From Bugula neritina (Eukaryota > Animalia > Bryozoa), in the NCBI GenBank assembly GCA_964035545.1, contig CAXIUT010000309.1, positions 1 through 36,781 of the forward strand: a stretch of DNA of 36,781 nt. The letters run 5' to 3'. The translations under genes were made by a program, and so were the position numbers. Below the pieces are notes generated by a model, which saw nothing but the letters and a program-made list of their open reading frames with translations, was not told the DNA's origin and searched no databases. This document shows, one piece after another, positions 28,826 through 29,317 of this stretch (positions within the stretch are counted from its first letter, which is position 1; every line of letters starts with the position of its first letter).

Positions 28826-29317
28826 ATGGCTGACCAACTCAACTAAGAACAAATCGCTTAATTCAAAGAAGCTTTCGCTCTCTTCGATAAAAACGGTGAT
28901 GGCTCTATCACTACCAAGGTATTTCTTCTTCTATCCAGGAACTTGGAACTGTCATGCGTTCTCTTGGTCAAAACCCAACTTAAGCCGAACTTCAAGACAT
29001 GATCAATGAAGTCGATGCTGACGGTAATGGCACTATAGATTTTCCTGAATTTCTTTCTTTAATGGCAAGGTACCTTCAGTTTCATTTATAGAAAAATGAA
29101 AGATACTGACACATAAGAAGAGCTAATTTAGGCTTTTAAAGTCTTTGACAGAGATGGCAATGGACTCATTTCAGCTGCTGAATTACGTCATGTAATGACC
29201 AATTTGGGAGAAAAGTTGACTGACGAAGAAGTTGATGAGATGATTAGATAGGCTGATATTGACGGAGATGGACATATCAACTACTAAGAATTCGTTAGAA
29301 TGATGATGGCAAGATGA
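28826..29317 (+). CDS. CAM1: Calmodulin (149 aa)
   Basis: [26 protein letters not shown]...[12 protein letters not shown]; introns 28919-28938 (20 nt) and 29070-29091 (22 nt); exactly 149 codons plus TGA after splicing. Confidence 0.99.

Follow-up and report, generated by a model that had tools for sequence, protein, structure and literature searches.

It is highly probable that the window, i.e. the whole stretch of DNA of 36.8 kb that was analysed, represents an entire macronuclear chromosome from a ciliate of the class Oligohymenophorea, most likely a peritrich, which was present on or with the assembled animal and uses the genetic code of NCBI table 30. The window is a telomere-to-telomere macronuclear chromosome of a ciliate, because C4A2/G4T2 repeats are found at both of its ends. 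The two telomeres were read directly in the sequence and have the following positions:

1 to 87, no strand assigned, left telomere, C4A2 repeats
36689 to 36781, no strand assigned, right telomere, G4T2 repeats

The GC content of the window is about 29%. Stop-free pieces of the window matched Pfam families for a prolyl-tRNA synthetase (ProRS) that includes a YbaK-type editing domain, an adenylate/UMP-CMP kinase, a P450, and an inositol-phosphatase-like gene. The matches to LIN9-like and RPB9-like proteins were weak and remained under the Pfam cut-off.

The initial annotation had proposed that TAA and TAG (together UAR) both encode Glu and that TGA is the only stop codon, and had listed seven UAR codons in the calmodulin gene. 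The structure of this gene is as follows:

28826 to 28918, plus strand, calmodulin exon 1, with TAA at 28844 and 28859, both Glu
28919 to 28938, plus strand, calmodulin intron 1, 20 nt, GT..AG
28939 to 29069, plus strand, calmodulin exon 2, with TAA at 28981, which is Glu in NPTEAEL
29070 to 29091, plus strand, calmodulin intron 2, 22 nt, GT..AG
29092 to 29317, plus strand, calmodulin exon 3, with TAA at 29114 and 29285, TAG at 29129 and 29249, and the stop codon TGA at 29315-29317

When 28826-29317 is translated without splicing, the frame is lost twice, because of the two small spliceosomal GT..AG introns, which were absent from the initial annotation. The spliced coding sequence has a length of 450 nt, i.e. 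149 amino acids and the TGA, and a second in-frame TGA is present at 29321-29323, two codons past the stop. All seven UAR codons, five TAA and two TAG, are located exactly where they had been reported, and the gene ends in TGA, as had been claimed. They are accompanied by 14 GAA/GAG codons.

A stop-free piece of 39 residues matches calmodulins in the PDB with an E value of ~1e-30, and the aligned stretches cover the greater part of calmodulin. After removal of the introns, five of the seven UAR sites are visible in the alignments, and the PDB calmodulin residue is Glu at each of them (QLTEEQIAE, NPTEAEL, DTDSEEE, NYEEF). The remaining two sites (LI*AF and IR*AD) fall into two-residue gaps between the aligned stretches; we take the established calmodulin sequence to have RE and EA at these gaps, i.e. 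Glu in both cases. The reported placement of the UAR codons on conserved Glu residues thus holds for five sites by alignment and for two by the established sequence. Glu represents ~14% of calmodulin, and the probability that UAR would be found on Glu at seven of seven sites by chance is ~1e-6. The lengths of the two introns are compatible with the intron-length pattern of peritrichs, as intron lengths in published peritrich genomes are narrowly distributed (PMC13685798).

Three further genes of the window, all on the minus strand, are rich in UAR codons:

14089 to 16350, minus strand, prolyl-tRNA synthetase, with a YbaK-type editing domain at the N-terminus and a single TGA-bounded frame that contains 16 TAA and 10 TAG
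18816 to 20402, minus strand, gene for a kinesin-14-like motor, containing 29 TAA and 6 TAG and terminated by TGA
13417 to 14088, minus strand, gene for a UMP-CMP/adenylate kinase, containing 8 TAA in frame and terminated by TGA

The C-terminus of ProRS is canonical (...RSY, compared with the canonical ...SY) and is directly followed by TGA. With a stop-free piece of the protein, 150 ProRS homologues were gathered and compared with the window by tblastn under the standard code. The TAA at 15250-15252, which the initial annotation had placed on the Glu of RPTSE, is opposite Glu in 37 of 37 homologues, and the TAG at 14563-14565 is opposite Glu in 141 of 143. In most of the other UAR columns of this alignment, Glu is the plurality residue. 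Likewise, the TAA reported for the NMNERSSRSH motif of the kinesin is present in the switch motif N-x-N-*-RSSRSH (~19209-19211). The TAG reported for GTENAYFP in ProRS has to be discounted, because its column is variable (T 14, E 7) and carries no information.

A word-index search revealed ~100 stop-bounded ProRS fragments with identities of up to 90%, and on each of the respective contigs ProRS occupies one TGA-bounded frame, with a length of 626-679 codons and 8-21 UAR codons. Codons were counted in the ProRS genes of the window and of eight distinct metagenome relatives (65-91% identity), using columns with a conservation of 80% or more across 15 or more references. At these conserved columns of the nine lineages, TAA is on Glu at 19 of 19 sites and TAG at 6 of 6, and none of the 25 UAR codons is on a conserved Gln, Lys or Tyr. 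Only GAA, GAG, TAA or TAG are used at conserved Glu columns. CAA/CAG are on Gln only (53 sites), and AAA/AAG are on Lys only (80 sites). Because Glu accounts for 7.5% of the conserved columns, 25 of 25 UAR codons on Glu would have a chance probability of ~8e-29.

Five of five genes, i.e. calmodulin, ProRS, eRF1 (see below), kinesin-14, and the kinase, end in TGA, and for calmodulin, ProRS, and eRF1 this stop is located at the conserved C-terminus. Together, the conserved-column alignments and the TGA ends support the proposed code, NCBI table 30, in which UAA and UAG are Glu codons and UGA is the terminator, for the nuclear genes of the ciliate. As ordinary Glu codons, UAA and UAG supply roughly between one quarter and one half of all Glu, and nearby in-frame second TGAs would serve as a backup for termination.

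UAR codons are sometimes opposite Q, K, P or A at variable columns of ProRS and eRF1, which would be expected if UAR were ambiguous (mostly Glu, sometimes Gln or a context-dependent stop) or if UGA were also a sense codon, similar to Condylostoma or Blastocrithidia, without a dedicated stop. However, the conserved columns have UAR on Glu in 25 of 25 cases, and conserved Gln is encoded exclusively by CAA/CAG (53 of 53). In addition, TGA does not occur in frame in the ProRS genes of the nine lineages or in calmodulin, eRF1, kinesin, and kinase, and introns of ~20 nt can mimic an in-frame TGA. The use of UGA (or of all three stop codons) as sense inside genes, a feature of Condylostoma, karyorelicts, and Blastocrithidia, was not observed in the conserved genes examined, which are free of in-frame TGA. 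We therefore regard an ambiguous code as very unlikely. The probability is lower still, and practically negligible, for two codes that are both known in Oligohymenophorea (PMC10553269), namely the split code of Oligohymenophorea sp. PL0344, in which UAA is Lys and UAG is Glu, and the common ciliate code, in which UAR is Gln. These are refuted by the alignments, which have TAA on an invariant Glu (37 of 37 homologues, 19 of 19 sites across the clade, and five calmodulin sites) and zero times on a conserved Lys or Gln.

The plus strand of the window contains two further frames. One of them (124-5496) is a TGA-free frame of 1,791 codons with 149 TAA and 41 TAG; its product has a Q-rich N-terminus, followed by a GYPE repeat and then by a long coiled-coil-like region:

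1438 to 1557, plus strand, GYPE tandem peptide repeat inside the 124-5496 frame, with codon 4 being TAA in 7 units and GAA in 2

The same position of the repeat carries TAA or GAA, and thus both codons interchange within one repeat. The other (11413-11748) is an ATG-to-TGA open reading frame of 111 codons with zero UAR codons, which is unusual on this chromosome. It has a weak, transposase-like match to HTH_23, which is under the Pfam cut-off.

The window is part of an animal genome assembly of 216 Mb in 321 contigs. The nine large contigs (C1-C9) carry matches to the eRF1 family that are split by introns and are without in-frame stop codons, and a tandem rDNA array is present on one of them (C6). 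For these reasons, the large contigs are those of the animal host, which uses the standard code, and the ciliate is a passenger in the assembly. The assembly thus comprises the large host chromosomes (C1-C9) versus many telomere-capped ciliate minichromosomes among C10-C321, and the ciliate genome is only partly represented. The same stretch as the window is present in sequencing runs from three studies with three organism labels. At least one contig, C214, has a dense tRNA cluster that is organelle- or bacterium-like, and C73 (70.6 kb), which may be a mitochondrial genome, has two copies of an AT-rich tRNA-like gene (6135-6163 and 17707-17735; L077, L078) with a 6-nt anticodon loop, for which ARAGORN gives the anticodon 'ta'.

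The eRF1 gene of the ciliate is located on a telomere-capped contig (C314) and comprises 437 codons, including 11 TAA and 7 TAG, and a TGA at its end. Four of the TAG codons are opposite Glu in conserved motifs of the host's standard-code eRF1. The pieces that flank the NIKS loop align to residues 8-46 and 116-136 of human eRF1. The loop piece itself (24 amino acids) is divergent and remained without a PDB hit at E values of up to 1, and therefore the alignment of the loop rests on the flanking pieces and on residue counting. According to the residue count, QIKD is found at the NIKS position, and a TAA just upstream of the loop piece is at E55. GTS is altered, and YNCDSRF is present where YLCDNKF is expected. 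The variants KATNIKD of Tetrahymena and SIKD/DPQ of Paramecium have been tied to UGA-only release, and departures from N-I-K in eRF1 are confined to ciliates (PMC3632111, PMC2613156). The replacement of NIKS by QIKD, together with the altered GTS and YxCxxxF surroundings, would restrict release to UGA. Inspection of domain 1 thus revealed a variant loop of the kind expected from the initial annotation, which had predicted a UGA-specific eRF1; the specificity itself is deduced from this loop and remains a prediction. In addition, a ciliate tRNA-Pro(UGG) gene was observed on the same contig (L001, 2118-2189), where it is separated from eRF1 by a few hundred bases.

The initial annotation had also predicted tRNA-Glu species with the anticodons UUA and CUA, and candidate genes are present for one of these anticodons. 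Two tRNA(CUA) genes were found, one on C10 and one on a complete minichromosome of 12.4 kb (C256), and both contigs are telomere-capped. The genes have scores of 57 and 62 bits versus the Rfam tRNA model, and a T-run comes after each of them. The C10 tRNA(CUA) has several features in common with the host tRNA-Glu(CUC), i.e. U1-A72, C2-G71, C3-G70, the GGTTAGGA D-loop, and a short variable loop. The C256 tRNA(CUA) is without clear isotype marks and has no clear Glu-like features. Pattern searches of the assembly, which holds part of the ciliate genome, did not reveal a tRNA(UUA), and neither did they reveal the ciliate tRNA-Glu and tRNA-Gln. TAA is more common than TAG, yet it is the UUA tRNA that was not found. 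In the proposed mechanism, the two CUA tRNAs and the unseen UUA tRNA would be charged by GluRS.

The phylogenetic position of the ciliate was addressed with a single-gene tree of ProRS, in which named references were included via a mixed profile and support was estimated by SH-aLRT. The lineages with UAR=Glu form a clade (support 99) inside the ciliates (support 100). This clade is sister to Paramecium, Pseudocohnilembus, Ichthyophthirius, and Tetrahymena with moderate support (86). Peritrichia belongs in Oligohymenophorea, and the position in the tree is where Peritrichia is expected, so that it appears consistent with, albeit not specific for, a peritrich. The clade comprises at least eight lineages, occurs in many metagenomes (freshwater and wastewater-type), and is also a contaminant in the data of other organisms, e.g. 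a red-alga transcriptome. The nearest ProRS relatives are from metagenomes and runs without labels.

In the ProRS tree, the UAR=Glu clade has its closest sister in a contig of 21 kb (L203, Logan SRR21902435) from a GC-rich organism (51%). Its ProRS gene (6997-9072, 691 codons) has zero TAA/TAG and ends in TGA, and neighbouring called open reading frames break at TAG or TAA. This contig could show a low-UAR stage of the UAR=Glu code.

Searches for the ciliate's small subunit (SSU) rRNA were also performed. The 18S primers including Peri974F are sessilid-specific (PMC4103560), and Peri974F had no match within three mismatches in the assembly. The universal 1391 site was restricted to the rDNA array of the host on C6 and to two places on C135. 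Primer-site searches and SSU comparison revealed no ciliate SSU rRNA in the assembly, and therefore the absence of the Peri974F site says nothing about the placement. C135 (337 kb) contains two identical eukaryotic SSU rRNA genes, at 17793-19642 and ~184920-186769 (L190, L191), which are 167 kb apart. They were rejected as genes of the ciliate, because of a GC content of 55.7% and an identity of just 73-78% to peritrich SSU; their source is the host or a third eukaryote.

The peritrich primer site was present in 84 metagenome contigs, among which at least 15 rDNA contigs end in C4A2 telomere repeats. These rDNA minichromosomes thus have the same telomere repeat as the window. Several such contigs, with sizes of 6.5-9.9 kb, have the repeat at an end, and one of the primer-positive rDNA contigs (L135) contains a group I intron (2939-3239), located between the Rfam SSU match and the 5.8S gene.

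UAR = Glu with UGA as stop is known from Peritrichia only, and a single origin was inferred there (PMC10553269). If the ciliate were outside Peritrichia, the reassignment would have an independent origin, as had been suggested conditionally in the initial annotation. Several observations would fit such an origin: the comparison contains no labelled peritrich sequence, Peri974F is without a match, the ProRS tree gives an affinity to Oligohymenophorea only, and a relative in the same class, PL0344, evolved UAG = Glu separately (PMC10553269). However, the primer result is uninformative in an assembly without any ciliate SSU, and both the tree position and the telomeres, identical to those on the peritrich-primer rDNA minichromosomes, are as expected of Peritrichia. 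The same is true for the diversity of the clade, its presence in freshwater and wastewater-type metagenomes, and its passenger habit, which would be expected of sessile peritrichs. A new origin of the code is thus not supported, as the clade branches with named Oligohymenophorea, has C4A2 telomeres, and is a passenger of an animal, all of which fits Peritrichia, and we consider it unlikely. With a correspondingly high probability, the ciliate is a peritrich.

The carriers of table 30 include Vorticella, Opisthonecta, Campanella, and Carchesium. The ciliate of the window has the same code as these peritrichs (UAA/UAG = Glu, UGA stop) and has oligohymenophorean affinities; its membership in Peritrichia is probable, and it adds candidate machinery, i.e. 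the tRNA(CUA) genes and the QIKD eRF1. With Tetrahymena and Paramecium, which use table 6, it shares UGA as the only stop, an xIKD eRF1, suppressor tRNAs with a CUA anticodon, and C4A2 telomeres. In contrast, UAR is Glu here and Gln there, and conserved Gln columns are without UAR here. PL0344 is from the same ciliate class and also has UAG = Glu, whereas here UAA is Glu as well. Blastocrithidia (table 31; UAR = Glu or stop, UGA = Trp) likewise reads UAR as Glu, but in the present ciliate, which is not a trypanosomatid, UGA is a stop that is never in frame in the genes examined, and the genome has telomere-capped minichromosomes and 20-nt introns.

The code is already known from peritrichs and is therefore real but not new, and it is most probably found here in one of its known carriers. 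For the animal assembly, this means that ~300 small contigs represent a ciliate passenger, the annotation of which needs table 30 and introns of ~20 nt; when the standard code is applied to these contigs, every gene looks shattered. In public protein sets, the UAR=Glu clade is represented only by stop-broken fragments from unlabelled metagenomes. If a separate origin within the oligohymenophoreans were true, the tRNA(CUA) that combines an acceptor stem of the Glu type with a Gln-like anticodon arm would document how a former UAR=Gln suppressor was re-assigned to GluRS. At the genome level, few data exist on the machinery behind the peritrich code, and therefore the tRNA(CUA) genes and the QIKD eRF1 are concrete objects with which the shift of UAR from Gln to Glu can be tested.
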